This document shows positions 493-55,086 of a stretch of 64,000 nt of DNA, piece by piece. Each line of letters opens with the position of its first letter. The first letter of the stretch is position 1. The notes below the pieces were generated by a model. That model had not been told where the DNA came from, ran no database searches, and saw only the letters and a program-made list of their open reading frames with translations. Source of the stretch: Hemiscyllium ocellatum. Its lineage: Eukaryota. Where the stretch lies: contig NC_083405.1 in assembly GCF_020745735.1 (NCBI RefSeq), positions 62,586,345-62,650,344 of the forward strand, given 5' to 3'. Both the position numbers and the translations under genes were made by a program.

Positions 493-784
493 TATAAGGT
501 AACTATGGCTGGGCTACAACCTACACCTGTTCGATTATCATAACGAGTAGTTCGACAACAAAAAGTTAGTAAGAAGATATCAAAAGAAATACTGAAAATA
601 TATTATTAGCTAACACTAATTCTTTTATCATAAAAATATACCTTTAATTATTATCCTTTACTGTGTCATAGATATGAAGTTTCCAGGCCAGGATTTTAAA
701 AATAAACTTTAAGTGTTCTCCTCAACCAATCCAAATAAGATGAGGAATAACCAATACAATATGCAAACAGTTTATATTTTAAAA

Positions 785-1114
785 TTTGCTCATGGGATGT
801 GGGTGTCACTGGAGAAACTAGCATTTACTGTCCATCATAATTGTTCATAGGCAAATGCTGTAGGCTTGGGAACACATGCAGGTCAAACTCAGTACAGATG
901 ACAAATTTCCTTTTCTAAATGGTATGAGTGAATCAGAGGCTTTTTACAACAATCAACAATTGTTTCCATTAGACTGGCTTTTTTTTTCAGATTTTCATCA
1001 AATTCAAGTTTCACTATCTACCATGGTGGGATTTGAACCGCTGTCACCAGGACATTCGTCTGGGGTTCTGGATTACTGGTCCAGTGGCATGGCCACAATG
1101 TCCCCATGTTCCTC
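785..1114 (-). mobile_element. tRNA-derived SINE sharing both head/body and 3' tail with the LINE at 30633-33780
   Basis: - strand B box GGTTCAAATCC; body resembles 30795-30870; tail AGTAAATGCTAG...CACCCACATCCCATGA resembles 33720-33765. Confidence 0.75.
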
Positions 1115-2094: not shown

Positions 2095-3070
2095 GGAGTC
2101 ATACAGCATGAAAACAGACCCTTTGGTCCAACCAGTCCATGCCTAACATAATCCCAAACTAAATTAATCCCTCTTGCCAGCACTTGGCCCACATCCCTCC
2201 AAACACTTCTTATTCATGTACTTATTGAAATATCTTTTAAACATTGTAACTGTACCCAGATGCATCACTTGCTTTGGAAGTTCATTCCACACACAAACCA
2301 CTGTGTAAAAAAGTTGCCCCTCATATCCTTTTTAAATCCTTTTCCTCTCACCTTGAAAATATGCCCCCTAGTCTTAAAATTCCCCACCATAGGGAAAAGA
2401 CACCTGCCATTCACCTTATCTGTACCAGTCATTATTTTATAAACTCTATAAGGTCACTTCTTAACCTCCTATGTTCCAATGAAAAAGTTTCCAGCCTATC
2501 TAGCCTCTCTTTATAAGTAAAACCCTTCAGTCCTGGCAACATCCTGGTAAATCTCTTCTGAACCCTCTACAGCTTAAAAATATCTTTCCTATAATAGGAG
2601 CACTACAACTGGACACAGTATTCCAAAACAGGCCTCACCAACATCCTGTACAACCTTAACATAACATCCCAATTCCTATACTCAGAAGTCTGAGCACTGA
2701 GGGTAAGCATGGTAAACACCTTCTTAACGACCCTGTCTACATGTGATGCAAACTTCAAAAAATTATGTACCAGAACCCCTGCGTCTCTCTCTCCCCAAGG
2801 CCTTCCTTTTAATTGTATAAGTCTTGACTTTGGAGAAAGTGAGGACTGCAGATGCTGGAGACCAGAGTCAGAGTCAGAGTGTGATGCTGAACAAGCAGAG
2901 CCAGTAAGGCAGCATCCGAGAAACAGGAGAATTAACATTGAGCATACTGATGAAGGACTTATGCTCGAAGTGTTAATTCTCCTGCTTCTCGGATGCTGCC
3001 TGACTGGCTGTGCTTTTTCAGCACCACACAGTTTTACTAAGTCTTGACTTTGCTTTACCGAAATGAAAAG
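2095..3070 (-). mobile_element. CR1 LINE 3' fragment, interrupted by a PLE-derived palindrome
   Basis: RMLVRPVLEYCVQL motif in ORF 2603..3076; typical CR1 3' end ...GGTCTGTTTTCATGCTGTATGACTC. Confidence 0.9.
2833..3037. mobile_element. Palindromic PLE-derived insert (family A) with degenerate hammerhead
   Basis: 15-bp TSD TAAGTCTTGACTTTG (2818-2832, 3038-3052); inverted arms; CTGATGA-AGGACTTATGCTC-GAAG at 2947-2970. Confidence 0.85.
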
Positions 3071-6421: not shown

Positions 6422-8292
6422 ATGTTTCAGTTACACAGGGACATTAACAAGACCACATTTTGCATACTGTACTCAGTATTCATGTACTTCTCCTTATTTA
6501 AGCAAGAATGCAAATGCATTGAGGTGCTTCAAAGGAGGTTTACTAGATTGATACTTTAATCACTGTTTTAAAAATAGAGGTTTTACCCTCTTAAGACAAA
6601 GGTAAGGAGATTTTTTTTCTCTCAGAGGGTTGTGTAATTTTGGAACTCTGCCTCAGAGAGATGGAATATTTTTCAGATAGAAGATTTTATTCGGCAGGAA
6701 AATCAAAGATTATCAAGACTAGATGGGAACGTGGAATTCAAAAAACAAACAGATATGCCATGATCTTATTGAATAGTAGAGCACGCTTTAGGAGTTGAAA
6801 AAGTTGACTGGGGGCAGATGTTTGTAGGTAAAGAATGGCTGGAAAATTGGAAGCCTTCAAAAATGAGATAACGAGAGTTCAGATACAGTATGCTCCTGTT
6901 GAGTGAAGGGCAACACTGGGGTAGGTCTAGCAAAATACTGGATGACAAGAGAAATTGAGGTGTTGGTTAGGAAAAGGTCAGGCAGACAGCAGAGATCGGG
7001 TGAATTCCTTGAAGACAATTGGAGTATACTTAAGAGAGAAAGAAGGAGGACAAAATGGGGACGTGAGATAGTTTTGACAAATAGGGTTAAGGAGAATCCA
7101 GAGAGCTTCTACAAATACATCAAAGGCAAAAGAGCAATTAGGGAGAGAATAGGGTCCCTTTAAAGATTAACAAGGCAGTCAATGTGTGGAAATTCAGGAA
7201 ATGGGGATATACTAAACACTTATTTTGCATCAGTGGAAAACAATGTGGAAGATATGGAATGTGGGGAAATAATAGCGACATCTTGAAAAAGATATTATAG
7301 ACGAGTTGGCGCTGGACGTCTTAAAATGAATAAATGTGGATAAATCCCTGGACATGATCAGGTGAACCCTAGAACTCTGCAGGAAGCTAGGGAAGATACT
7401 GCTAGGCTCCTTGCTGAAATATATGTATCATCAATAGCCAAGGTGGAGCGCCAGAAGACTAGAAATTGGCTAATATTGGTGTCATTATTTAAGAAAGGTG
7501 GTAAGGAAAACCTAGGGAACTGTAGCCAGAGAACCTGACATCAGTGACGGGCAAGTTGTTGGAGGGAATCCTGAGGGACAGGACTTGCATGCATTTGAAA
7601 AGACAAGGACTGATTAGGGATAGTCAACATGGCTGTGCATGGGAAATCATGTCTCACATATTTGATTGAGTATTTTTGAAGAAGTCACAAAGAGGATTGA
7701 TGAGGGCAGAGCAGAGGATGTGATCTATATGGACTTCAGGGAGGTGTTTGACAAGGTTCCTTATGGGAGTCTAGTTGGCAAGGTTAGATCACATGGAATA
7801 CAGGGAGAACTAGCCATTTGGATACAGAACTGGCTCAAAAGGTAGAAGGTGGTGGGGGGGGGTTACTTTTCAGACTAGAGACCTTGTGGTGTGTCACAAG
7901 GATCGGTGAAAGGTTCACTGCTTTTTATCATTTACATACATGATTTGGATATGAACATAGGAGGTATGGTTACTAAGTATGCAGATGACACCAAAGTTGG
8001 AGGTATGGTGTACAGTAAAAAAAGTTACCTCAGAGTACAATGGGATCTTGATCACATGGGCCAATGGGCCGGGGAGTGGCAGATGAAGGTTTATTTAGAT
8101 AAATGTGAGCTGCTGCATTTTGGAAAGGCAAATCAGGGCAGGACTTATACACTAAATGGTAAGGTCCTGGGGACTCTTGCTGAACAAAGAGTCCTTGTAG
8201 TGTAGGTTCATAGTTTCTTGAAAGTGGATTCCCAGGTAGACAGAACAGTGAAGGAGGTATTTGGTATGCTTGCCTTTATTCGTCAGTGCATT

Positions 8293-8603
8293 GATTAGAT
8301 TAGACTTACAGTGTGGAAACAGACCCTTCGGCCCAACAAGTCCACACCGACCCACCGAAGCGCAACCCACCCATACCCCTACATTTACCCCTTACCTAAC
8401 ACTACGGGCAATTTAGCATGGCCAATTCACCTGACCCGCACATCTTTGGACTGTGGGAGGAAACCGGAGCACCTGGAGGAAACCCATGCAGACACGGGGA
8501 GAACGTGCAAACTCCACACAGTCAGTCGCCTGAGTCGGGAATTGAACCCGGGTCTCTGGCGCTGTGAGGCAGCAGTGCTAATCACTGTGCCACCGTGCTG
8601 CCC
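8293..8603 (-). mobile_element. HE1 SINE (V-SINE), young
   Basis: - strand GGGCAGCACGGTGGCACAGTG head, B box GGTTCAATTCC, V-domain GGGTTTCCTCC..GTGCTCCGGTTTCCTCCCACA, CR1-like tail with (TCTAA)n. Confidence 0.95.
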
Positions 8604-11795: not shown

Positions 11796-13469
11796 CAAGG
11801 AATGGGTGGTGGTGTCAGAAGGTGAGCCATTTTAAATACATGGTGGCCAGGGATGGATCGGCAGATGCCAAGAGTCAGTGGTTGATTCCACGCAATATGT
11901 AATGGTCACCAAAGACAGCAGAAATTGATCACAAGTAACTCACAATGCAGAGTATTCACTGTAAAGTAGCAAACCTGAACCTTCGAGTTAAAGATGCTAA
12001 CGCCATCATTATGGATCGTGCTCCAGGGTCACTCAGAGGAAACAGGGGCACGCCGCTCCCCACTCTGGCTGCAGGATTATGAAGAACATGGTTTCTGACC
12101 TGAGCATGCAGGGACCTTGTCTGTGCTCACTGGCATATGTACTACAGATCCCGTTCTGACACAGGGCAGTGGAAAACAAGGGTGCCAAAAGCTGCACAGA
12201 ACCCCCCATGCCCCTCCTTGATTGCCAGTCTCATGTATTCTTTCAGGTAGCCTGGAAGAAACCAACTGCTGGACTGCAGCTGCTGACCTCTTTAACCACT
12301 AGCACAGGAGTCCTATTTTAATTCACATGTCGTATACACCATGGAGAGCAGTGCTTGCATTATGAACAGGCTGGTCCAGTCAACTTAATGTATGGTATCA
12401 GCAAAGTGGTAGATCTTCAGCATACACACCACAAAAATAAAATCCCCACCAACAGCTTCAATTATTTATTTTACACAACAGATGCTTTAAGGTAAAAGCT
12501 TCATAGTACACTGAAAACACTTCTGTTAGCTACCCTAATTAAAGTCTACCTGTAGTCAGCTTATATCAAAGCAATGACACATAGGTTTCAGGTCATTTAT
12601 TGAATTTTCCTGCTGTAAGAAACAACATATTTTTCATTTTTGGGATTGCAAACAGAAAAGGGAAAGTGGATCACAGTAATTAAAAGACCAGGAAAACTTT
12701 GCCACTTGAAAATCAAATGCTGCATATATTGTTGAATTGTGTTAATGAACATATTCATTTGAAGCAGTAAAAGGGCGAATTTAAGACTGAGGACACAAGA
12801 ATCTTCCAAGTTAAGAAGCTATAGGACAACAGCTATCTAATTGCTTGAACCACACAGTGTTAAAAAGTTGCAACTTCCAGGAGCCACCGTTCCTGAAAGA
12901 GAAGAAAAGTCCAGAGTCAGTAAAGAGAAAGCACCTGTCTCTTTCTCTCTCAGCCCACATGGGGAAAAGACTGAACAACAATGAAAGCTTAGAAGAATAA
13001 ATTCTTCAAAAGACCTCAGTCCATCTGATCAGCCATTGATTCAAAGAATGACCATCACCCTAAAGGCAAAAGTGTGTTAACATTGCAAAACTCAACAGGA
13101 CTGTGAGAAAGTAATTTTACACCTGGTGTTCTGGACTTCTCGTCTTCAGAATTTTACTTAACCTGCCTATATTATTTTTCCAACCATAGTTTGTGTGTTA
13201 ACCAGTTGTCTTTTGTTTATCGTAAGCATAACTGAGGTGTATTTTGGGACTGTTAAATGTATAGTCTAAATCACACAGTAGTATATTAGAAATTATTTCA
13301 TTTCACTGCTCTTGCTAAAGTTAAGTCATTTTCTGTTACTGATTAACCTGGCGTGACTGCTTTTATCCTGCAGAGCAGTCAGACAAATTGGTTATTTTAG
13401 TAGTTGCTTTAGATATTATACATTTATACACTTTGCAGAATAGTGGGACATTATCATGCACTCTTCCCA

Positions 13470-27460: not shown

Positions 27461-27818
27461 AAGTTAACAATATCACCAAAATAACTAATTAACAACTCAA
27501 GAAAAATAGTAGTACAGGTGGTGTGTCAAAACCTCAGTATGTGGGAGCTCAAGGATACCATTGTGGTCCAGGGCAAATAAACCTGTGGTAAATGTTTGAA
27601 ATTTATGCAGCTTCACCTTGGAGTTAAATCAGAGTTCATGGTTCGGGTCCAGTGAGCCTCTGAGGAAGGATATTAACTCTGATTTCTCTCCAGAGAGGCT
27701 GCCAGACCTGCTGAGCTTTTCCAGCAATTGCTGTTTTTGGTTCTGAATTCCAACATCTAGCTGGAATTTGGTTTTGGTTCACCCTAGAGTTTATGAGCTG
27801 GAGGCTGAATTACAAACA

Positions 27819-27890
27819 GGATCCAAACTCAGGTCCCCAGAACATTTGCTGGGTCTCTGGATTGCAATAATAGCACTAGGCCATTGCCTC
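27819..27890 (-). mobile_element. Inverted tRNA-like head of the 30633 LINE/SINE family
   Basis: Reverse complement GAGGCAATGGCCTAGTG...GTTCTGGGGACCTGAGTTTGGATC matches 30633-30712. Confidence 0.75.
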
Positions 27891-27891
27891 T

Positions 27892-28403
27892 AATCTCCAC
27901 CACTGATGTACATTGCCACACACTGCTGCCATTGAAAAGATGTACTGCAGCAATTTACCAAATCTTTAAAGCCTACACCTTCCAGACCCATGACTTCTCC
28001 ACCAAGAAGCATAAGAGTAGTAGACAAATGGGAATACCAATTATACACCTGCATTTTATTTTGTTGCAGGGTGCCCGGAGATCCATGCATGGCAATAGCT
28101 TGTAAAACCAGAAGTCAATGTGTCAGCGCAACAATTGCATGTGTGTAGAACCTCAAAGGAACCTTGCAATGACTAAATACTCCAAGTTTCCCTTCAAAGC
28201 AATCACTATCCTGACTTGGACCAGTATTACCATTCTATCACTGTTCCTGAAACTCCCTTCCTTATGGCACTGAGTGTTCCTACACCACAACGTGGGGGTG
28301 CAGCAGTTCAAGAAAGGACTCAACTCATCATCACCTTTGCAAGGACAATTTGGGATGGACAATAAAGCTGGCCTGGTAAGTGGTGCATATCCTATGAATG
28401 AAT
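27892..28403 (+). mobile_element. 3' fragment of the tRNA-headed LINE family
   Basis: Homologous to 33415-33765 (TCCTGACTTGG, GTTCAAGAAAG, GGACAATAAAGCTGGCC tail). Confidence 0.75.
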
Positions 28404-29880: not shown

Positions 29881-32800
29881 CTTTCCAGAACACATCAGAT
29901 AATGACTATAATTGTGAGTAAGGTAATGGCTGAAATAAAAATGGACAAGTTTACCAAACCATGTAACTTTCAGCTGCCGAGCTTCCAATCAATTCAAAAA
30001 TGTGGAGGATTTGACCCACTAGCCACCTGACTAAGGAGCAGCACTCCGAAAGCTTGTACTTGCAAATAAACCTGCTGTACTGTAACCTGGTGTTCTGTGA
30101 TTTTTAAATAAGTAATTCAAAGGCACGAGGCTTGAACTTATTCTTCTTGTTTGCAGAGAATAATGTTTGCATATATAATTGCATGTCACCACTAAAAAGC
30201 CTAAATGACCATGTTAAAGCCCCATGATTATTTTTGATTGGTTGTTAGTTTGTGGTTCAAAAAAAGAATTGGCAGCTAACATGAAAGGGAAGCAAAAATC
30301 TTTTAAAGATGATATAAATACTAAAAGGATTGTAAATCAAGGAGCGGGTCCAATTAGAAGCCAAAAAAGGAGGCTACTTCTTGAACCTTTTCAAAAGAAC
30401 ACTTGACAAAGCCAAGGACACCAGATAGAGCAGTGAAAATGGTGCACTTGCAAATACAATCTGTTTTATGGAGCCATTGACTCTGTAACACTTTCAAAGA
30501 AAGGTCATGTGCCCCAGTTTTAGTATCCCCTTTAAGCTGTGCAGCTACCCAGACACCCTGTCATGCTGACTAACGTGCCAATGCACTGGCTTACTCATGT
30601 GCAGGTTGCAGTTGCATGCGGAATTCAGAGGTCGGCAATGGCCTAGTGGTATTATCACTAGACTATTACTCCAGAAACTCAGCTAATGTTCTGGGGACTT
30701 GAGTTTGAATCCTGCCATGGCAGATGGTGGAATCTGAATTCAATAAATAAAAAATCTGGAATTAAGAATCTGCAGGTGACCATAAAACCATCACATTCGC
30801 TAATGTCCCGCAGGGAAGGTTATCTGCCATCCTCATCTGGTCTGGTCTACATGTAACTCCAGACCCAGAGTAACGTGGCTGACACTTAACAGCCCTCTGA
30901 ATTGGCGAAGCAAGCCACTCAATTGTAGCAACTGATACAAAGTTTAAATAAAATGAACAGACCACCTAGCATTCACCCAGGCATTGGGAAATACATCAGA
31001 AACAGCCCTGTCGACACAACAGATGCTCCTTACTAACATCTGGGAGAGCTGTCTCACAGACTAGTCAAACAACTGCCTAACACTGTCCGTAATGTATGAT
31101 TCTGTGAGCATGACTATGTCCCAGACAACACCATCACCATCCCTGGATATGACCTATCCCACTGGCAGGACATACCCAGCAGAACTGGTGGCACAGTGGT
31201 ATACAGTTGAGAAGGAATGCCCCGGGAGTCTTCAACATTGACTCCAGATCTCGAAGTCTTGCAGCTTTAGGTTAAGCCTGGACAAGAAACCTTCCAGCTG
31301 ATTACCATGTACCATCCTCCCTCAGCAGATGAATCAATACTTCTCCATGTTGAACAACACTTGGACAAAGCACTTAGTGTGGCAAGGTGATAGAATGTCC
31401 TCTGGGTGGGGGAATTTCAGTGTCAAGAGTGGCTTGGCAGCAACACTACTGATTAAGCTCGTCATGTCCTAAAAGACATAGCTGCTAGACTGGGTCTGCA
31501 GTGGTGGTAAGGGAACTAACAAGAGGGAAAAACATACCTTACCTCATCCTTTCCAATCTGCCAGCTGCAGGTGTATCTATCCATGACAGTATTGGTAAGA
31601 GCAACCATCGCATAATCCTAGTGGAGACAAAGTCCTGCCTTCACACTAGGAATAACCTACATCATGTTGTGTAGCAGTATCACCTTGGGACAGACTTCAA
31701 CAAAGCTAGAATTCAAGACTGGGCACCCATCCTGGGCACTGTGGGCCAACAACAGCAGCAGAATTGTACTCCAGACAATCTGTAACCTCATGACCCGGCA
31801 TATCCCCCACTCAGCTATGACCATCAAGCAGGGGAACAACCCTGGTCAATGGAGAGTGCAGGAGGGCATACCAGGAGCAGTATCAGGCATAGCTGCAGAT
31901 GAGGTGTCAACATGGTGAAGCCACCAAACAGGAAGACTTGCATGTCAAACATCAGAGGCAGCAAATGATAGATAGAGTGAAGAGATCCCACAACAAATGG
32001 ATCAGATCTAAGCTCTGCAGTCCTGCCCATTCAGTCATGAGTGGTGGTAGAAAATTAAACAACTCACTGGCAGAGGACACTCCATAAAATACCCTCATCC
32101 TCAAATGATGAAAGAACCCAACACATCAGTACAAAAGATAAGGCTGAAGCTTCAGCAGCAATCTTCAGCCAGAACTGCCGTGCAGATTATCCATCTTGGC
32201 CTCCACCAGTTGTCCCCAGCATTATAGATGTCTGTTTTCAGTCAATTCGATTCACTCCACGTGATATCAAGAAACGGTTGGAGACACTGGATACTGCAAA
32301 GGCTACGGGCCCTGACAATATTCCGGGAACAGTACTGAAAGTTTATGCTCCAGAATGTGGCTCTCCCTTAGCAAGCTCTTCCAGTACAGTTACAATACTG
32401 GCATCGATCCAAAAATGTGGAAAAACATCAAGTACACAAAAAGCAGGACAGATCCAACCATCCAATTATTGCCCTATCTGTCTATTCTCAATCATCAGTA
32501 AGTGATGGAAGATGTCATCAATTGTGCTATCCGAACAGCACTTGCTCCATAAAAAAAAACCTGCTCGGTGACGCCCAGTTTGGATTCTACCAGGGCCACA
32601 CAACCCCTGACCTCATTATAGCCCTGGCTCAAATGTGAGTACAAGAGCTGAATTCTAGAGGTGAAGTGAGAGCCAAAGCCCATGACATCAAGGTTGTATT
32701 CAACTGAGTGTGACATCAAGAAAAACTGGAATCAATGGGTATTGGGGTGAAAATTCTCCACTGGTTGAGGTTGTATTTGCTTTGAACAATAGAGAGACTT

Positions 32801-33074
32801 GGGCTGACAAGTGGCAAGTAACATTCGCGCCATGCAAGTTCCAGGCAATGAACATCTTCAATAAGAAACAATCTAAATGCTGTTCCTTGACATTCAGTAG
32901 TGTTACCATCACTGAATACACTACTATCAACATCCTGCAAGTTATTATTGACCAGAAACTCAACTGGACTCACCGCATAAACACAGTGACTACGAGAGCA
33001 GGAGAGGGGCTAGGCATACTGCAGTGAGTAACTCACCTCCCGACTCCCCAAAGCCTGTCTAACACCTATAAGGC

Positions 33075-33281
33075 TGAAAATGTGTTGCTGGTTAAAGCAC
33101 AGCAGGTTAGGCAGCATCCAAGGAATAGGAAATTCGACGTTTCGGGCATAAGCCCTTCATCAAGAATTATGCCCGAAACGTCGAATTTCCTATTCCTTGG
33201 ATGCTGCCTAACCTGCTGTGCTTTAACCAGCAACACATTTTCAGCTGTGATCTCCAGCATCTGCAGACCTCATTTTTTACC
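33075..33281. mobile_element. Young palindromic PLE-derived insert (family A)
   Basis: Perfect 79-bp inverted repeat 33073-33151/33167-33245 with 15-nt loop; perfect 16-bp TSD CTAACACCTATAAGGC (33059-33074, 33282-33297). Confidence 0.95.
33131..33168 (-). ncRNA. Minimal type I hammerhead ribozyme motif (U3 variant)
   Basis: AATTC-TTGATGA-A-GGGC-TTAT-GCCC-GAAA-C-GTC-GAATT: 5-bp stem I, 4-bp stem II, palindromic ACGT stem III, GUC triplet; C3 replaced by U. Confidence 0.7.
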
Positions 33282-34319
33282 CTAACACCTATAAGGCAAA
33301 AGTTAGGAATGTGATGGAATATTCCCCACTTGCCTTGATGAATGCAGCTCCAACAACACTGGAGAAGGTTGATATCATCCAGGACACAGCAGTCTGCTTG
33401 ACTGGCATGATGTCCACTCCCTCTACCATTGATGCTCTAACTAAAAGAAGCACTGCAGAATTTCACCAAATATCTTCAGACAGCACCTTCCAAACCTATG
33501 ATCACTTCCATCTAGAAGGACAAGGATAGCAGACACATGGAAACATCACCACCTGCAAGTTCCCCTCCAAGGCACTCCCATCCTGACTTGGAAATATAAT
33601 TGCTGTTCCTTCACTGTTGCTCTGTCAAAGTCCTGGAATTCCCTCCCTAATAGTATTGTGGGTCAACCCATAGCAATGGTTCAAGAAAGCGGCTCCTTCT
33701 CAAGGGCAAATAGGAATGGGCAATAAATTCTGGCCAGCCAGAGAGAGACACATCCCACAAATGAATTAATTTTTTAAAAATTGAGGTATGTTGTTCAATT
33801 TATGGCTGTAAACCAAATGGTTTACTATCTTCCTTTTTCTGATTTTGGTCAAGTTCTGGTTTTTGTTTAAAAAAAACATTTTGTATACTTTTTCATGCTG
33901 AGCAAGAACGCCACCAGAGGACATCTTGACAGCCTAGTTTGAAACCAATTTTCTGCTTGCATGAACCTCAAATCCAGCAGGCCACAAATCCTACATTCAC
34001 TGTTCAGCATTTAAATTAAGAGTCAATGATTCTGGCCTCCGATCCTACCTCAAATATTGTCTAACGCTTTTCCTGTAACCTTCAAGACCTGCTACATGAT
34101 TGTTCTTCAGACAGTGGTTACAAAAGTTCAACAACTACTGTTACAGATTAAAAAACCAAATTCCATGATGCAAGCTATACATTAGACTGATAATGGCTGC
34201 TGCTCATCACATGTTCGACATTCTGGTTATTTGTTCAATAATATGCTCCCTCTTAATGTGATATCACAGTAAGTATCAATCATGTTTGTATGACACTTTT
34301 CCTCTACATTTATGATATA

Positions 34320-37147: not shown

Positions 37148-37643
37148 CAGGTAGGTTAGATTAGATTCCCTACAGTGTGGAAACAGGCCCTTCGGCCCAG
37201 CAACTCCACACTGAACCTCTGAAGAGGATCCCATCCAAACCCCTTTCCCTATCCTATATTTACCCCTGACTAATGCACCTAACACTATGGACAATTTTGC
37301 ATGACCAATTCACTTGACCTATACATCTTTGGATTGTGGGAGGCAACCAGAGTACTCAGAGGAAATCCATGGGGAGAATGTGTGAACTCCACGCAGATGG
37401 TCAACCAAGGCAGGAATTGAACCCGGGTCCCTGGCTCTGTGAGGCAGCAGTGCTAGCCACTAAGCTACCCCAATCTTTAACATGATGGTTGCGTCCTTGT
37501 GCAACTCCATGTTATAGAAAAATTGCACTCTAGAAACGGCATTTAAAGTGTTGGCAATGTAATTGCAATACGTATGTTTTAAAAGTTCACACTTTAGAAA
37601 CACTGTCCTCAGTTCAAAACATGCATTATAGCAGAACAACCTG
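37148..37643. mobile_element. Tigger-like MITE split by an HE1 SINE
   Basis: TA|CAGGT... left end and ...AGCAGAACAACCTG|TA right end; SINE interrupts the left TIR. Confidence 0.6.
37153..37471 (-). mobile_element. HE1 SINE
   Basis: Homologous to 8293-8603. Confidence 0.9.
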
Positions 37644-39510
37644 TATCCCATTCATCATACATGAAGTTCTGGACTTGGTGTCCTACCTTTCTGTTCATGG
37701 GAATAAATCTTTCATATATCTAACATATCTTTTAAAACAGTCCATTAATCACCTATTGTTTTTCCTGACAATTTTAATTTATCTGGCCCAGTGTCATTCT
37801 TTTCCATTGAAAAAGTTGACTCTTTTGGGATGGGCAAGAAATGCTGGCCTAACCAGTAACTGCCTCATTTAAAAATGATTTTTTTCCCAGTTAATTATTT
37901 TCAGTTTGGATTTTTTTTCCCTTTTCCAGAGCCAACCTAAATCTCATGCGCAAGGATCACCACCCTCTAAATTTTCCTTTATTGACACTTGATCCACTTC
38001 ACCCACTTCGGTGTCTTCTTTGTCATTGGACTGGGATCATAATGCCATATAAAATTTTCCTGAACACAGTCGAGGAACTCTTGCCAATCTTTGTTCTTTA
38101 AACTATTACTATCCAGTGTATATTCAGATAATTAAAGCTCACCCATTACAGCTTTGCTATATTTCTGCAAAATAACTGTTCTTTGCAAACTTCTTCTTCG
38201 ACATCATTCTAAATTGTTGGTGACACAGAAATATAGTGCACCTTTTTAGTTCCTTAGGTTTAACGAAATGAAATATTTCTTTGATCCCTCTGGTGTGTCC
38301 TCTACCTCCAACACAGCAATATTTTTACAATGTTTAACTAACTTAACATTTTCCATATGTAACTTCTCACAGTTTATATGCTGTGTACTGAACATTCTTC
38401 AACCCATTAATCAAAAATGTTCTCTTGTATACATCAGAAATTGTCTCCCTTAGTTTTATATATTTTCAATGTACATTAAAGTAATCAAGGTCATCTAAAT
38501 ATACTATATTTTTAAAATCTAATATTGAAATTTGACAAATTCTCTCATCTATCACCTTCTTACCATTTGGATTTCTACACAAAACTCCCAATGAGGTAAC
38601 AACTGCCTGTTAGTTCCTGAATTCAAGGCATTTTCTATTCTAGAATCACATGTCACATCCTTTCCAGTTAGAACATTATGTTTAATTAGTATTGCCATAT
38701 CTCATTCTCTTTCCATCTTCTCCATAATGCCAAAATATTTGGTAATCTGAAACATTAAGAACCAATTCCTTACCTCTTTTGAGCCACATCTCTAATGCAA
38801 TCATGTCAGACTCTCATGCAATAATTTGTATTTGCAGCTCACCAACTTCATCAGTTAGACCACAGACATTAAAATAAGTATATTATCTAGTTTTGTGATT
38901 CATACTTTTTTTCCTCAAAACCATCCCTTCAATTTTTGGAATGTTTCTGATTTTATTGCTGTCTGTATCTGTATCCTCTGATTTCAATGCTGCTCTTTCT
39001 TTTCTCCTTTGAAATTAATTTTCCAACAGTCCAAGTAAATTCCTATGCATGTTTTATATGAAATTTCACATGGAATGCCAATATTTTCCTGGGCTCAATG
39101 TATCCAAATTTTGCAAATTAATTTGGTTTAACAAATTAATTTAACTACATAAATTTCTTCCCACTTTTTCTTATATGCTTCCCACTTGGCTTGAGAGAGT
39201 CAAATTACTTTGCTGGACAGTTGCTGGTCAGCACTCCATTATTCATACTATCCAAAACAGTGATATAATTTTTTTAGACGTGGATGACTTACAATTTACT
39301 TTAATTCATTGAATAATACCAGAACTGAAAAGGTTACCAGGACTGATTGATCAGGCCGAGATCGTTTATTCACAAAAGCGAAGACTTCAGGATGATAGAA
39401 GAGTTTAATAAGGTACATGTGGATATTGTTGCTTGCAGGCATGATCAAAGCCATAAATGTAAGATAGCTACCAATAAATTCAGGTAGGAATTCAGGAAAA
39501 ACATCTTTCA

Positions 39511-42604: not shown

Positions 42605-44392
42605 ATTTTTTAATTCACTCATAGGATGTGGGCATTACTTAGTCCAGCATTTCTTGCCCATCTCTATTTGCCCTTGAGAAAGTGGTGGTGAGCTGCCTTC
42701 TTATTACTGCTGCAGTCCAAATGCTATCGGTAGATTCACAATGCCTTTAGGGACCAAATTCCAGAATTTTGACCCAGCGACAGGGAGATCAATATATTTC
42801 CATGTCAGGATGATGAGTGGCTTACAGGAAAACTTGCAAGTGGTAGTGTTCCCATGTACCTGCTACCCTTGTCCTTCTAAATGGAAGTGGACATGGGCTG
42901 CACTCATCCAGGCAATTGATGAGTATTCTGTCAGACTTGTGCATTGTAGATGGTGAACAGGCTTTGGGAAGTCAAGAGGTGACTTACTCGCTGCTGCATT
43001 CCAAGCCTCTGACCTGCTCTCGTAGATACTGTGTTTACGTGGCAAGTCCAGTTCAGTTTCTAGTCAATGGTAACCCCAGGATGCAGATAATAGGGGATTC
43101 AGTGTTGGTAATACAAATGAATGCCAAGGAGCAGTAGATAGATTATCTCTTATTGGAGATGGTCATTGTCTGGCATTTGCTGGCACGAATGTTGCCTGAA
43201 TATTGTCCATCTCATGGTACATTTGGACATGGACTGCTTCAATATCAAAGGTGCCATGAATAGTCCTGAACACTGTAATCATCAGCAAACATCCCCACAT
43301 CTAACGTTAATAATAGAGAAGGTCATTGAAGTAGTAGGTGAAGATGGTTGGGTCTAGGGCATTACACGAAGGCACTCCTGCACAGATGTCCTGAAGCAGA
43401 AATGACTACCTCCAACCATCTTGTGTGTCAGGTATGATTCCAACCGGTGGAGAGTTTTCTCTCAATTCCTACCGAATCCAGTTTTGCTCGGGCTCATTGG
43501 TGCAACATGCAGTTAAATGTGCTTTGATATCAAGGGCTATCACTATCCCACCTCTGGAATTCAGTTTTTGTCAATGTTTGAATCAAAACTGTAATGAGGT
43601 CAGAAGCCAAATGATCCTGCAGGACCCAAACTGGGTATCACTAAGCGGCACGGTGGCACGGTGGGCGGCACGGTGGCACAGTGGTTAGCACTGCTGCCTC
43701 ACAGCGCCTGTAGACCCGGGTTCAATTCCCGACTCAGGCGACTGACTGTGTGGAGTTTGCACGTTCTCCCCGTGTCTGCGTGGGTTTCCTCCGGGTGCTC
43801 CGGTTTCCTCCCACAGTCCAAAGATGTGCGGGTCAGGTGAATTGGCCAAGCTAAATTGCCCGTAGTGTTAGGTAAGGGGTAAATGTAGGGGTATGGGTGG
43901 GTTGCGCTTCGGCGGGTCGGTGTGGACTTGTTGGGCCGAAGGGCCTGTTTCCACACTGTAAGTCTAATCTAATCTATCTAAGCAGCTAAATAGTAAGCAG
44001 GTGCTGCTTGACAGCACTGTTAATGATACCTTTCAACACTGTGCTGATGATCAAGACTGTACTGATGGGACAGTAGTTAGTTTGGTTGGATTTGTCCAGC
44101 TTTTTGCGCACAAGACATAGCTGGGCAATTTTCCATAATGCTGGGTAGATGCCAGAGTTATAGCTGTACTGGAACAGTTTGGCTTGGGGAGCAGCAAATT
44201 CTGAAGCACACGTCTTCAGAATTATGTCAGGGACCATGATCTTGACAATATTCTGTGTCTTCAACTGTTTCTTGAGATCATGTACAGTGAATCAAATTGA
44301 CTGATGACTTGCACCTGTGATGCTGGACATCTCTGGAGGAGGCAGAGGTATTTGATCTACTTGCACTTCTGACTGAAGATTGTTGTAAATGC
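42605..44392 (-). mobile_element. Second copy of the tRNA-headed LINE family (5'-truncated, RT core retained)
   Basis: LWKIAQLCLVRKK..NYCPIS (ORF 43986..44264), GMFADD near 43285, same 3' tail as 33700-33770. Confidence 0.85.
43647..43977 (+). mobile_element. Very young HE1 SINE with duplicated 5' end
   Basis: CpG-rich; TSD CTAAGC (43641-43646, 43978-43983); near-identical to 8293-8603. Confidence 0.97.
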
Positions 44393-44558
44393 TGTGGCGA
44401 TGCTGCTCCTTTGTTATTCTGCCCTTGTTCTTTTTGAAAGGCGGCATAAATGCAGAAGGTTCCAATGTATCTGCTTTAGATGGGATTTAGGAACAATTTG
44501 AATAGCTAACAGATACTGCTTTAGGAAAAAAGGCTTTCAAGTTTTGATAAAAACACTT
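44393..44558 (+). mobile_element. 5' part of the solo LTR family
   Basis: TGTGGCGATGCTGCTCCTTT...ACAGATACTGC...AAACACTTG, homologous to 40089-40260. Confidence 0.6.
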
Positions 44559-44559
44559 G

Positions 44560-45268
44560 GTGAGTTTTGAGAAGATTCATCGCTCAGGTTGAGGTTCTGG
44601 ATGTAGGGTTGCTCGCTGAACTGGAAGGTTAGTTTTCAGACATTGTATCACCATACTAGGTAACATCATCAGTGAGCCTCTGGATGAAGCAATGGTGGCA
44701 TGGCGCACTTTCTATATATGTGTTTGGGTTGCCAAGGGCTGGTGATGTCATTTCCTGTACGTTTTCTCAGGGGGTGGTAAATGGGATCCAAGTCAATGTG
44801 TTTGTTGATAGAGTTCAGGTTGGAATGCCATGCTTCTACAAATTCTCGTGTGTCTTTGTTTGGCTTGTCCTAGGATGGACGTATTGCCCCAGTCGAAGTG
44901 GTGCCCTTCCTCATCTGTATGTGAGGATACTAGTGAGACTGGGTCATGTCTTTTTGTGGCTAGTTGGTGTTCCTGTATCCTGGTGGTTAGTTTTCTGCCT
45001 GTTTGCCCAATGTAGTGTTTGTTACAGTCCTTGCACAGTATTTTGTAAATGACATTAGTTTTGCTCGTTATCTGTATAGGGTTTTTCAAGTTCATTAGCT
45101 GCTCTTTTAGTGTGTGGTGGGTTTATGGGCTACCATGATGCTAAGGGGTCTGAGTAGTCTGGCAGTCATTCCTAAAATGTCTTTGATGTAGGGGAGAGTG
45201 GCTAGGGTTTCTGGATGTGTTTTCTCTGCTTGTTTGGGTTTGTTGCTGAGAAATCGGTGGACTGTGTG
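44560..45268 (-). mobile_element. Penelope-like element 3' end: GIY-YIG endonuclease plus pseudo-LTR with hammerhead remnant
   Basis: ORF 44793..45095: NVIYKILCKDCNKHYIGQTGRKLTTRIQEH; TCA-CTGATGA-T-GTTACC..GGTGAT-ACAAT-GTC-TGA at 44636-44675. Confidence 0.92.
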
Positions 45269-46934: not shown

Positions 46935-48391
46935 ATAAATAATAATTGAGAAAACTGTGGATGCCGTTACTCATCCCTGTGCCTAAGACAACTCATGCAG
47001 CATGTCTCGATGACTACCGCCCCAGTGGCCCCAACTTCGGTGGTCATGAAGTGCTTTGAAAGGCTGGTCATGGCATTAATCAACTCCAGCCTCCCCACTA
47101 CTCTTGGCCCACTCCAACTTGCCTATCAGACCAACAGATCCACATCAGATGCCATATCACATGCCCTTCACTCTTCCCTAGGATATTTTGACACCAAGAA
47201 CAGCTACGTAAGAATCATACTCATTGACTACAGTTCAGCCTTCAACACTATTATCCCCTCGAGACTGAATACTAAACTTAGTGATCTCGGACTAAGCCCC
47301 ACACTCTGCAACTGGATCCTCAGTTTCCTGACCCACAGGTCACAATTAGTGAAGATTGCGGACAATATTTCATCCTCACTAATATTCAACACTGGAGCCC
47401 CCCCCCCAGGGGTGCTTACTCAGCCCCCTACTGTACTGACTGTATATCCATGACTGTGTCGCCAAATATCAGACAATTTCGCTGATGACACCCCCACAGT
47501 CGATCAAATCTCAGACGGCTACAAAACAGACTACAGATCGGAGGTGGAAGACCTGAAAACATGGTGCACTGAGAACAACCTAGCTCTCAATGCTGGCAAA
47601 ACCAAGGAACTCATTATTGACTTTCAGCAGGATGTTACTCATGCCCCCCTACACATTAACAGCACAGAGGTGGAGCAAGTGGAGAGTTCAAGCTCCTGGG
47701 AGTGGTCTTGGACTCTTCATGTGGACGCACTGATTAAAAAGGCCCAACAGGGTTTCTTCTTCCTCAGGCAGATGAGGAAACTTGGAATGACAGCAAATAC
47801 CCTTGCCAACTTTTATAGGTGCACCATCGAGAGCATGCTGTCTGGATGTATCACTAGCTGATATGGCAACTGTACCATTTAAGATCAGAGACGTTTACAG
47901 AGGGTGGTGAACTTGGCCCGGACAATCACAAAGGTCAATCTCTTATCTACAGAATCCATCTACCAGGCCTGCTGTTAAGGAAAGGCCGCCAGCATTCTCA
48001 AAGATCCATCCCACCCTGGCAATGTTTTTTCTACAACCTCTACCATCAGAGAGAAGGTATAGAAGGCTGAACTCACACACCAGCCGGTTTTGAAACAGTT
48101 TCTACACCACTGTTGTTAGAATACGGAATGGACTCACAAACGCTTAACATTCGCCTGTACCTGTGTTTTTGTTTATGTCTCTGTTACCCATTATAAACTT
48201 AACTATGCTACTTAACTATGTGATCTGCCTGTATTACTTGCAAGACAAAGCTTTTCACTGTGCCTCGGTACACGTGACAATAAATTCAATCAGAAACAAA
48301 ACAGACATTGCTAGAAAAGCTTAGCAGGTCTGGCAGCATCCGTGGAGGAAAATCAGAATTAACATTTCTGGTCAAGTGACCCTTCCTTAGA
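46935..48391. mobile_element. PLE-derived family B repeat split by a Rex1 insertion
   Basis: AACTGTGGATGC (left) and AATCAGAAACAAAACAG...GACCCTTCCTTAGA (right); 11-bp TSD ACTGTAAACTT (46924-46934, 48392-48402). Confidence 0.7.
46965..48290 (+). mobile_element. Rex1/Babar LINE, 5'-truncated
   Basis: TSVVMKCFERLV, NRSTSDAI, IDYSSAFNTIIP, FADDT, LNAGKTKELIIDF, FYRCTIES; tail CTTTTCACTGTGCCTCGGTACACGTGACAATAAA. Confidence 0.93.
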
Positions 48392-54285: not shown

Positions 54286-54385
54286 AATAAAGACAGAAGT
54301 AGCTGGAAAAGCTCAGCAGGTCTGGCAGCATCTGTGAAGAGAAATCAAAGTTAACGTTTCGGGTCCAATGACCCTTACTCAAGAG
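54286..54385 (-). mobile_element. PLE-derived family B half element
   Basis: - strand TTGAGTA-A-GGGTC-ATTG-GACCC-GAAA-CGTT-AAC (hammerhead with mutated core). Confidence 0.8.
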
Positions 54386-55086
54386 CTTCCAAAATCAGCC
54401 AGTTCACCTAGTTTAAAGGTATTAGGACCCACTTGACAGAGCATGCTGATTCTCAAGCCCTGTTACTCATGGGGTCATCATAAAAGGTTAATGATTTATT
54501 CAAAGTACATAAAGTCCCCAATTCACCCATCTAGTGGAATCAGGTTAACTGAAACCATTGAGCAAATACTTGCACTTAACAAGAACATATATTCATTACA
54601 AATAGTTTTGATGACGTGGCTAGAATCCATGAATTATAAACATATAACTCTACTAGTTGAAGCTCTTAACACCATTTTAAAATGCCAATACAGACAAACA
54701 TAAACACAAAGAAACAGGATGGTTGGAAAAATAAAATGAGGGGGAAATAATGTTCAATAGCACTAGTTCACAGCATTGATGAAATTTTCCTTTTGCTTCC
54801 ACTTTTGATCTTCACTTTGAGTATTTATGATTTTATTTAAAACATCTTGTCCACATCCACTTTTCTCTTCATTTGTGGAATCTCTCCTTTCAGCTGAGTT
54901 CTAAATCTCACCTCATTTGCTTAAAAGCTGAGAGAAGACTGTTGTCTTTGAGGAATATGGACTGGTTTTATCATTAGAACATTTGCATGTTTCAATACTT
55001 CTTCCCATTACTTATAAGTTTGCCCATTAACAATTCAGCCACATTGTGATCATTTACATTGCATTAATTTGAAATTTGCCTTAGTT

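Follow-up and report, generated by a model that had tools for sequence, protein, structure and literature searches.

The window analyzed here, the whole 64,000-nucleotide (nt) stretch of Hemiscyllium ocellatum DNA, carries near its start a SINE copy of ~320 bp that is old and decayed and lies on the minus strand. The first-pass annotation had placed this element at positions 785 to 1114, which is essentially right (784 to 1106 by our alignments), and its statement that the element contains no open reading frame (ORF) holds. The same window contains a second, shorter SINE fragment and two copies of a LINE. For comparison we used five loci from Heptranchias perlo (L001 to L004 and L006; ~170 kb in total), which were reached through protein searches with pieces of the LINE ORF that led to annotated fragments in other sharks. 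The features of the two elements in the window are as follows.

784 to 1106, minus strand: whole SINE copy, with a 349-bp alignment to the young Heptranchias SINE at L004:31684-32043.
1010 to 1106, minus strand: tRNA-like head of the SINE, 72% identical over 93 bp to the head of the window LINE.
850 to 1009, minus strand: linker and body of the SINE, homologous to the 5' untranslated region (UTR) of the LINE.
784 to 849, minus strand: tail of the SINE, matching the LINE 3' end at L002:12129-12192 with 79.7% identity over 64 bp.
37812 to 37885, plus strand: second SINE fragment, 5' truncated, consisting of the body end and the tail with another joint between them.
30630 to 33766, plus strand: LINE copy 1, with head, 5' UTR, decayed endonuclease (EN)/reverse transcriptase (RT) ORF, and tail, 71.9% identical over 2,069 bp to L002:9101-12189.
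30639 to 30712, plus strand: A box (TGGCCTAGTGG, 30639 to 30649) and B box (AGTTTGAATCC, 30702 to 30712) of the LINE head.
30784 to 30898, plus strand: portion of the LINE 5' UTR common to the SINE body.
33699 to 33766, plus strand: LINE 3' end common to the SINE tail (CTCAAGGGCAAATAGG … CACAAATGAAT).
42610 to 44486, minus strand: LINE copy 2, 5' truncated or interrupted, whose tail matches the SINE tail.

The SINE family is noncoding and 320 to 360 bp long, with two copies in the window and others in Heptranchias at L002 (~8180 to 8478, minus strand) and L004 (31684 to 32043, plus strand; 360 bp). In the window copy, the B box (GGTTCAAATCC, 1029 to 1039) has one mismatch and the A-box region (1081 to 1097) is decayed. 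The linker preceding the body is A-rich, the body itself occupies 850 to 954, and the tail extends to 784, where it reads …CCCACATCCCATGAGCAAAT. None of the copies has an identifiable target-site duplication, the 7-nt repeat near the window SINE being at chance level.

The window SINE is spanned, at ~95% identity, by contigs from two further species labels (one example, of 727 nt, covers 361 to 1086). Its presence at the orthologous locus under both labels dates the insertion to before the split of the three related species. The head core (1004 to 1047) and the end of the tail (784 to 827) are covered by contigs of the three species labels to a depth of 10^3 to 10^4 at a likeness of at least 80%, which fits large families having those parts in common. 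Within the SINE, multicopy depth peaks in the head core. The window copy itself is a dead relic without sign of function. Close by, at 300 to 520, lies a very high-copy repeat of another family, with a depth of 10^4 to 10^5 at a likeness of at least 80% under all three species labels.

The LINE family is ~3.3 kb long with a single ORF and is present in the same genomes as the SINE. EN and RT motifs occur in stop-free pieces of frame in window copy 1; a Pfam search with these ORF pieces returned no match, since the copy is too decayed, and the corresponding pieces from Heptranchias match Exo_endo_phos_2 and RVT_1. The Heptranchias LINE is younger, with 3' ends 91 to 96% alike. One of its copies has a complete 5' end (L003:8856 onward); another is truncated within the body (L002:9101-12189) and includes a 503-amino-acid (aa) EN-RT piece whose TAG stop codon, at 12133 to 12135, falls within the tail region common to the SINE. 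The end of the LINE tail (…GAACGAAT) is reminiscent of the L2/CR1 type. A more distant ENA contig, L005, has an 834-aa EN-RT ORF that is 38% identical to that of the shark LINE, with no head-like sequence upstream. A library search with window positions 32059 to 32502 recovered mainly short fragments; the only long close match, P0007, is a Sushi-repeat protein with an exonized LINE piece and no gene record, and it was set aside.

Several other elements occur in the window. LINE copy 1 contains an insert of 174 bp at 33073 to 33245 that forms an inverted repeat (hairpin) with arms 95% identical, and relatives of this insert occur at 2836 to 3028 and 54299 to 54388. A 72-nt isolated head fragment (27817 to 27888, minus strand) abuts a LINE 3' fragment (27904 to 28403, plus strand) in opposite orientation, an arrangement that could reflect chance nesting or an inversion during retrotransposition. 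Where the 5' side of LINE copy 2 is broken, positions 44672 to 45122 (minus strand) encode a stop-free piece of 109 aa with a GIY-YIG-like motif (…VIYKILCKDCNKHYIGQTGRKL…), which suggests a Penelope-like element. An RT ORF of 152 aa from a different LINE family lies at 46995 to 47453 (plus strand). Another SINE family is represented by A/B-box heads (TGGCACAGTGGTTAGCACTG…GGGTTCAATTCC) at 43674 to 43729 (plus strand), which is inside LINE copy 2, and at 37413 to 37467 (minus strand).

The first-pass annotation proposed that the SINE and the LINE have a head, a body, and a tail in common. Within the window, the heads and the tails match clearly. For the heads, SINE positions 1086 to 994 match LINE positions 30656 to 30747 with an E value of 7e-11. 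The tails match at 69% (SINE 843 to 793 against LINE 33707 to 33757), and against LINE copy 2 at 68% over 87 bp (SINE 860 to 775 against 42687 to 42604). The bodies are collinear (SINE 944 to 874 against LINE 30784 to 30854) and 62.5% identical over 72 alignment columns, a match equalled by 13 of 895 random pieces of the window (P ~ 0.015), so that body homology as judged from the window pair of sequences would be marginal. When the window SINE was compared with the window by BLAST at an E value of 1e-3 or less, it found only itself, and matches to the LINE appeared with looser scoring. The weakness of the direct body match stems from private deletions in both bodies, one of ~36 nt in the window LINE and one of ~18 nt in the window SINE, immediately before the joint with the tail, both placed by multiple alignments.

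The young SINE at L004 bridges this gap. It matches the window SINE over 349 bp at 63% identity (E = 3e-24), the 5' end of the window LINE (30641 to 30898) over 296 bp at 65.5% identity (E = 2e-26), and the tail of the window LINE (33711 to 33766) at 75% identity. The two places at which the body and tail had originally been compared, 30795 to 30870 and 33700 to 33765, fall within these bridged matches. Head, body, and tail are therefore all borne out as common to the SINE and the LINE, and the resemblance goes beyond generic tRNA-box similarity, the body being clearly homologous via the L002, L003, and L004 copies.

Within Heptranchias, the correspondence is complete. Bases 1 to 303 of the L004 SINE equal the LINE 5' end at L003:8856-9133 (80.5%), and bases 175 to 303 equal L002:9101-9229 (93.8% over the 129 nt that this truncated copy retains). 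Bases 303 to 360 equal the 3' ends of eight LINEs at 91 to 97%. Together, the two LINE ends thus explain the whole of the L004 SINE, with zero bases left over. As aligned, the SINE consists of the first ~295 nt of the LINE followed by its last 58 to 66 nt, in collinear order and without SINE-specific sequence. The internal segment that the SINE lacks begins ~130 to 190 nt upstream of the endonuclease and reaches as far as the last few codons of the ORF. The SINE tail accordingly comprises the final codons of the LINE, its stop codon, and its entire 3' UTR of ~52 nt.

The shared body includes an ATG (CAGCAATGTGG) at L003:~9104, L002:~9200, and L004:~31956; the window LINE has ACG at 30873. In L003 this ATG opens a frame of 59 codons, the endonuclease frame beginning within it. 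If the ATG is the start codon of the LINE, the SINE includes the first ~10 codons.

The alignments also show that the head is an integral part of the LINE copies and forms their 5' end. Three LINE copies from two species (the window copy, L003, and L002) are uninterrupted across the point at which the SINE departs from the LINE and continue into the endonuclease; in the window, the divergence follows position 30898 (…CAGCCCTC / TGAATTGG…). The head stands first in both copies with a preserved 5' end (window 30630 and L003:8856), and in Heptranchias the LINE and the SINE begin at the identical base (GGTACGGTAGC…), with unrelated flanks upstream. Chance nesting of a SINE beside a LINE was considered and is ruled out by the continuity of the three copies across the boundary.

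Exact A boxes (TRGCNNAGTGG), each with a B box (RGTTYRANNCC) downstream at an identical span of 74 nt, are present both in the SINE at L004:31691-31764 and in the window LINE head, and pairs with this span are expected by chance only 0.03 times per 241 kb. Describing the head as tRNA derived rests on these boxes and on a hairpin resembling an anticodon arm; this hairpin and a long extra arm are seen by eye only. A search with the Rfam tRNA models gave no tRNA match at an E value of 1 or less in L004:31600-32100 or in window positions 30550 to 31100, and ARAGORN called no tRNA in the window or in L001 to L004. The term "Pol III LINE" used in the first-pass annotation thus goes further than the A/B-box motifs, in a head that neither program calls a tRNA. 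The SINE copies contain no internal run of four T's, which would be compatible with Pol III transcription. On the sense strand of the LINE (L002:9101-12189, L003:8856-11196, and window 30632 to 33766), there are one to three runs of four or more T's against an expected 3.5 to 7, along with 13 to 18 runs of A. The scarcity of T runs would be compatible with a Pol III constraint or merely with an A-rich coding strand.

The deletion junction, whose mapping was proposed in the first-pass annotation, can be located in the window SINE at ~847 to 850. The LINE 5' UTR reads …TTAAYTGCCCTC / TGAAATGG… at the corresponding point (that is, …GCCCTC/TGAAATGG), and the LINE 3' end reads …CACCTTCTC / AAGGGCAATTAGGGATGGGC… (or, in another rendering, …CTTCTC/AAGGGCAATTAGGG). 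The joint in the window SINE and in the L002 SINE, which we call type I, reads …TGCC(C)T(C) / A(A)GGGCAAYTAGGG… (or, in another rendering, …TGCCCTC/A(A)GGGCAAYTAGGG) and has 3 nt of microhomology (CTC). It is common to copies from two shark orders, which indicates that the deleted form itself propagated as a family. The L004 SINE has a different, type II joint (…TGCCCTCT / TAGGG…), situated 8 nt past type I and ending 1 nt short of the stop codon of the LINE. This joint could reflect either another deletion, independent of the first, or a minor loss that came later. The fragment at 37812 to 37885 has a joint (GACTCTT/TTGGGATGGGC) unlike either type. On the tail side of the joint, a predicted stem-loop is retained in both SINE and LINE copies; covariation in the tails of these copies is almost absent because nearly all pairs are invariant.

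Taken together, these features probably identify window positions 784 to 1106 (minus strand) as a copy of a bipartite SINE family that arose by internal deletion from a head-bearing LINE of ~3.3 kb. The proposal that the SINE is an internal-deletion derivative of the LINE is supported in that the one is collinear with the other minus a single internal segment. There are zero SINE-specific bases between body and tail and zero tail bases in the LINE 5' UTR, and this exact collinearity favors deletion as the source of the body and tail. Because a LINE with head, body, and tail is found in two shark orders, one deletion can explain the SINE. An internal deletion in the LINE, or an intramolecular template jump, would have produced the SINE body and tail. 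Transcription from the head's internal Pol III-type promoter would yield the SINE RNA, and the LINE reverse transcriptase, recognizing the shared 3' hairpin, would copy this RNA in trans by target-primed reverse transcription, as in other "stringent" LINE/SINE pairs.

In this account, either the LINE or the SINE may have been the first owner of the head. For the body and tail, derivation of the SINE from the LINE is the direction that we consider probable, and it becomes highly probable when a two-step origin of the head, described below, is counted with it. The argument for direction is one of parsimony, drawn from two LINE 5' ends and about four SINE copies. A comparison of subfamily-diagnostic sites and ages had been suggested as a way to set the direction; distances were computed, and the direction of derivation does not follow from them. 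In the identity matrix, the SINEs are not grouped apart from the LINEs, and there is no signal of direction. The young SINE has 94% and 81% identity to the 5' UTRs of young LINEs but only 64 to 69% to old copies of the SINE, a difference that mainly reflects the ages of the copies.

We raise only tentatively the broader idea that the LINE is autonomous, with an RNA beginning at a Pol III-type promoter, that it repeatedly sheds SINEs by internal deletion, and that its 5' UTR would be the source of a conserved vertebrate SINE body, the Deu or V domain. Repeated shedding is suggested by the occurrence of two different joints and by the 94% identity of the young SINE to a LINE 5' UTR.

Two histories that assign the head differently are each improbable on present data. 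In the first, a two-ended LINE derivative that had no head gained the tRNA-like head and became the SINE, and the LINE later took the head from the SINE by a template switch guided by homology within the shared body. Such a switch, occurring in homologous sequence, explains the perfect collinearity, and the 94% identity between young SINE and young LINE 5' UTR is compatible with ongoing exchange. The scheme also fits the published model for RTE-derived SINEs (Okada/Hamada and Kojima; PMC5786205). It requires one event more than simple deletion from a head-bearing LINE, and in ~240 kb there was neither a head-less full-length LINE nor a head-less two-ended element.

Template switching makes chimeras at LINE 5' ends, as in U6/L1 and tRNA/L1. 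In the second history, to which we give no greater weight, the LINE captured the head and body of a SINE that is the older of the two elements and in which only the tail is LINE derived: the reverse transcriptase, at the 5' end of the LINE RNA, would have jumped onto SINE RNA, as in U6/L1 chimeras, and copied it to its 5' end, giving rise to a LINE subfamily whose 5' UTR comes from a SINE. Exchange of 5' UTRs is frequent among LINEs, chimeras of this kind are established, and the distances between SINEs and LINEs do not contradict such a capture. Moreover, the SINEs SacSINE1 and LmeSINE1 are reported with homology to a LINE in the tail only (PMC5499810), and conserved SINE bodies are found with many heads and tails (PMC5786205). 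Capture would become more attractive if the body proves to be an ancient Deu or V domain found elsewhere with other heads or tails. Against it, the captured piece must end within a few bases of the start of the LINE-derived tail, a coincidence of a few percent or so; under capture this match would be due to chance, whereas deletion gives it automatically. A head-less relative of the LINE was not seen, among very few 5' ends.

It is very improbable that the families are unrelated, the window element being a LINE copy whose middle was lost in place after insertion or else an unrelated SINE with generic tRNA boxes, for although the two bodies in the window match only weakly when compared directly, the L004 SINE provides a full-length alignment, the SINE tail matches LINE 3' ends specifically, and the type I joint also occurs in an independent copy from another shark order, which rules out decay in place.

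With the deletion origin as the preferred explanation, the interest lies in the relationship between the SINE and LINE families, not in the window copy. How SINE bodies originate is not settled; so far, the 5' UTRs of RTE and Vingi LINEs are their one documented source, and there the head was added later. If the relationship holds genome-wide, the before and after forms would be present in one genome for studying the birth of a SINE. With this pair one could also ask if a Pol III-type promoter can serve a protein-coding LINE and if a LINE 5' UTR was the starting point of a widely conserved SINE domain. Our literature search found no paper on a shark LINE that begins with the head and body of a SINE, although such absence is not proof, and a search of the literature for printed strings of the SINE body or tail found nothing relevant.

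The closest known elements include the shark tRNA-type SINEs. SacSINE1 and LmeSINE1, from shark and coelacanth (DeuSINEs, with L2-2_CM or CR1-4_DR-like partners), and HE1 (a V-SINE, with HER1 as partner) have a conserved body and a LINE-derived tail, and the window SINE is probably a member of one of these families. The LINE homology reported for them is confined to the tail (for SacSINE1 and LmeSINE1, PMC5499810 and the table in PMC3747384), whereas the window SINE matches its LINE in head, body, and tail.

The nonautonomous two-ended LINEs RIME/ingi, NARTc/L1Tc, the R2 SIDEs, and the RTE-N families resemble the shark pair in their internal deletion, in the retention of both termini of the parent, and in movement in trans. 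Unlike the shark SINE, they lack a head with Pol III-type A/B boxes, and their expression is attributed to the promoter of the parent or to a cotranscript. The U6/L1 and tRNA/L1 chimeras, in which a LINE copy has acquired a small Pol III RNA at its 5' end, are one-off dead copies, whereas the shark fusion is a feature of a family in two shark orders. RTE-1_DAn and related elements are LINEs whose consensus contains a tRNA-like stretch matching many tRNA-type SINEs (PMC5786205), but they are mentioned merely as a source of spurious matches, with no derived SINE and no 5'-terminal position described.

The closest parallels in structure are SINEs composed of a head, a LINE 5' UTR, and a LINE 3' end, which are known from Bov-tA, SINE2_Gav, and others (Kojima 2018, PMC5786205). 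The view in the first-pass annotation that SINEs usually borrow only the LINE tail is too strong in light of these elements, which exist for RTE and Vingi, the only LINEs from which 5' UTR contributions to SINEs have been found (Kojima 2018, PMC5786205). Bov-tA with Bov-B and SINE2_Gav with RTE-11_AMi share with the shark pair a tRNA-type head, a LINE 5' UTR, and a LINE 3' end, the latter two drawn from one LINE by internal deletion (Okada & Hamada 1997; Kojima 2018, PMC5786205). Their heads are proposed to have been added onto two-ended LINEs (Kojima 2018, PMC5786205); in these cases a head was joined to a deleted LINE and the LINE itself is head-less. The shark LINE differs in carrying the head, and it is this presence of the SINE head on the LINE itself that is unusual relative to the Bov-tA type.
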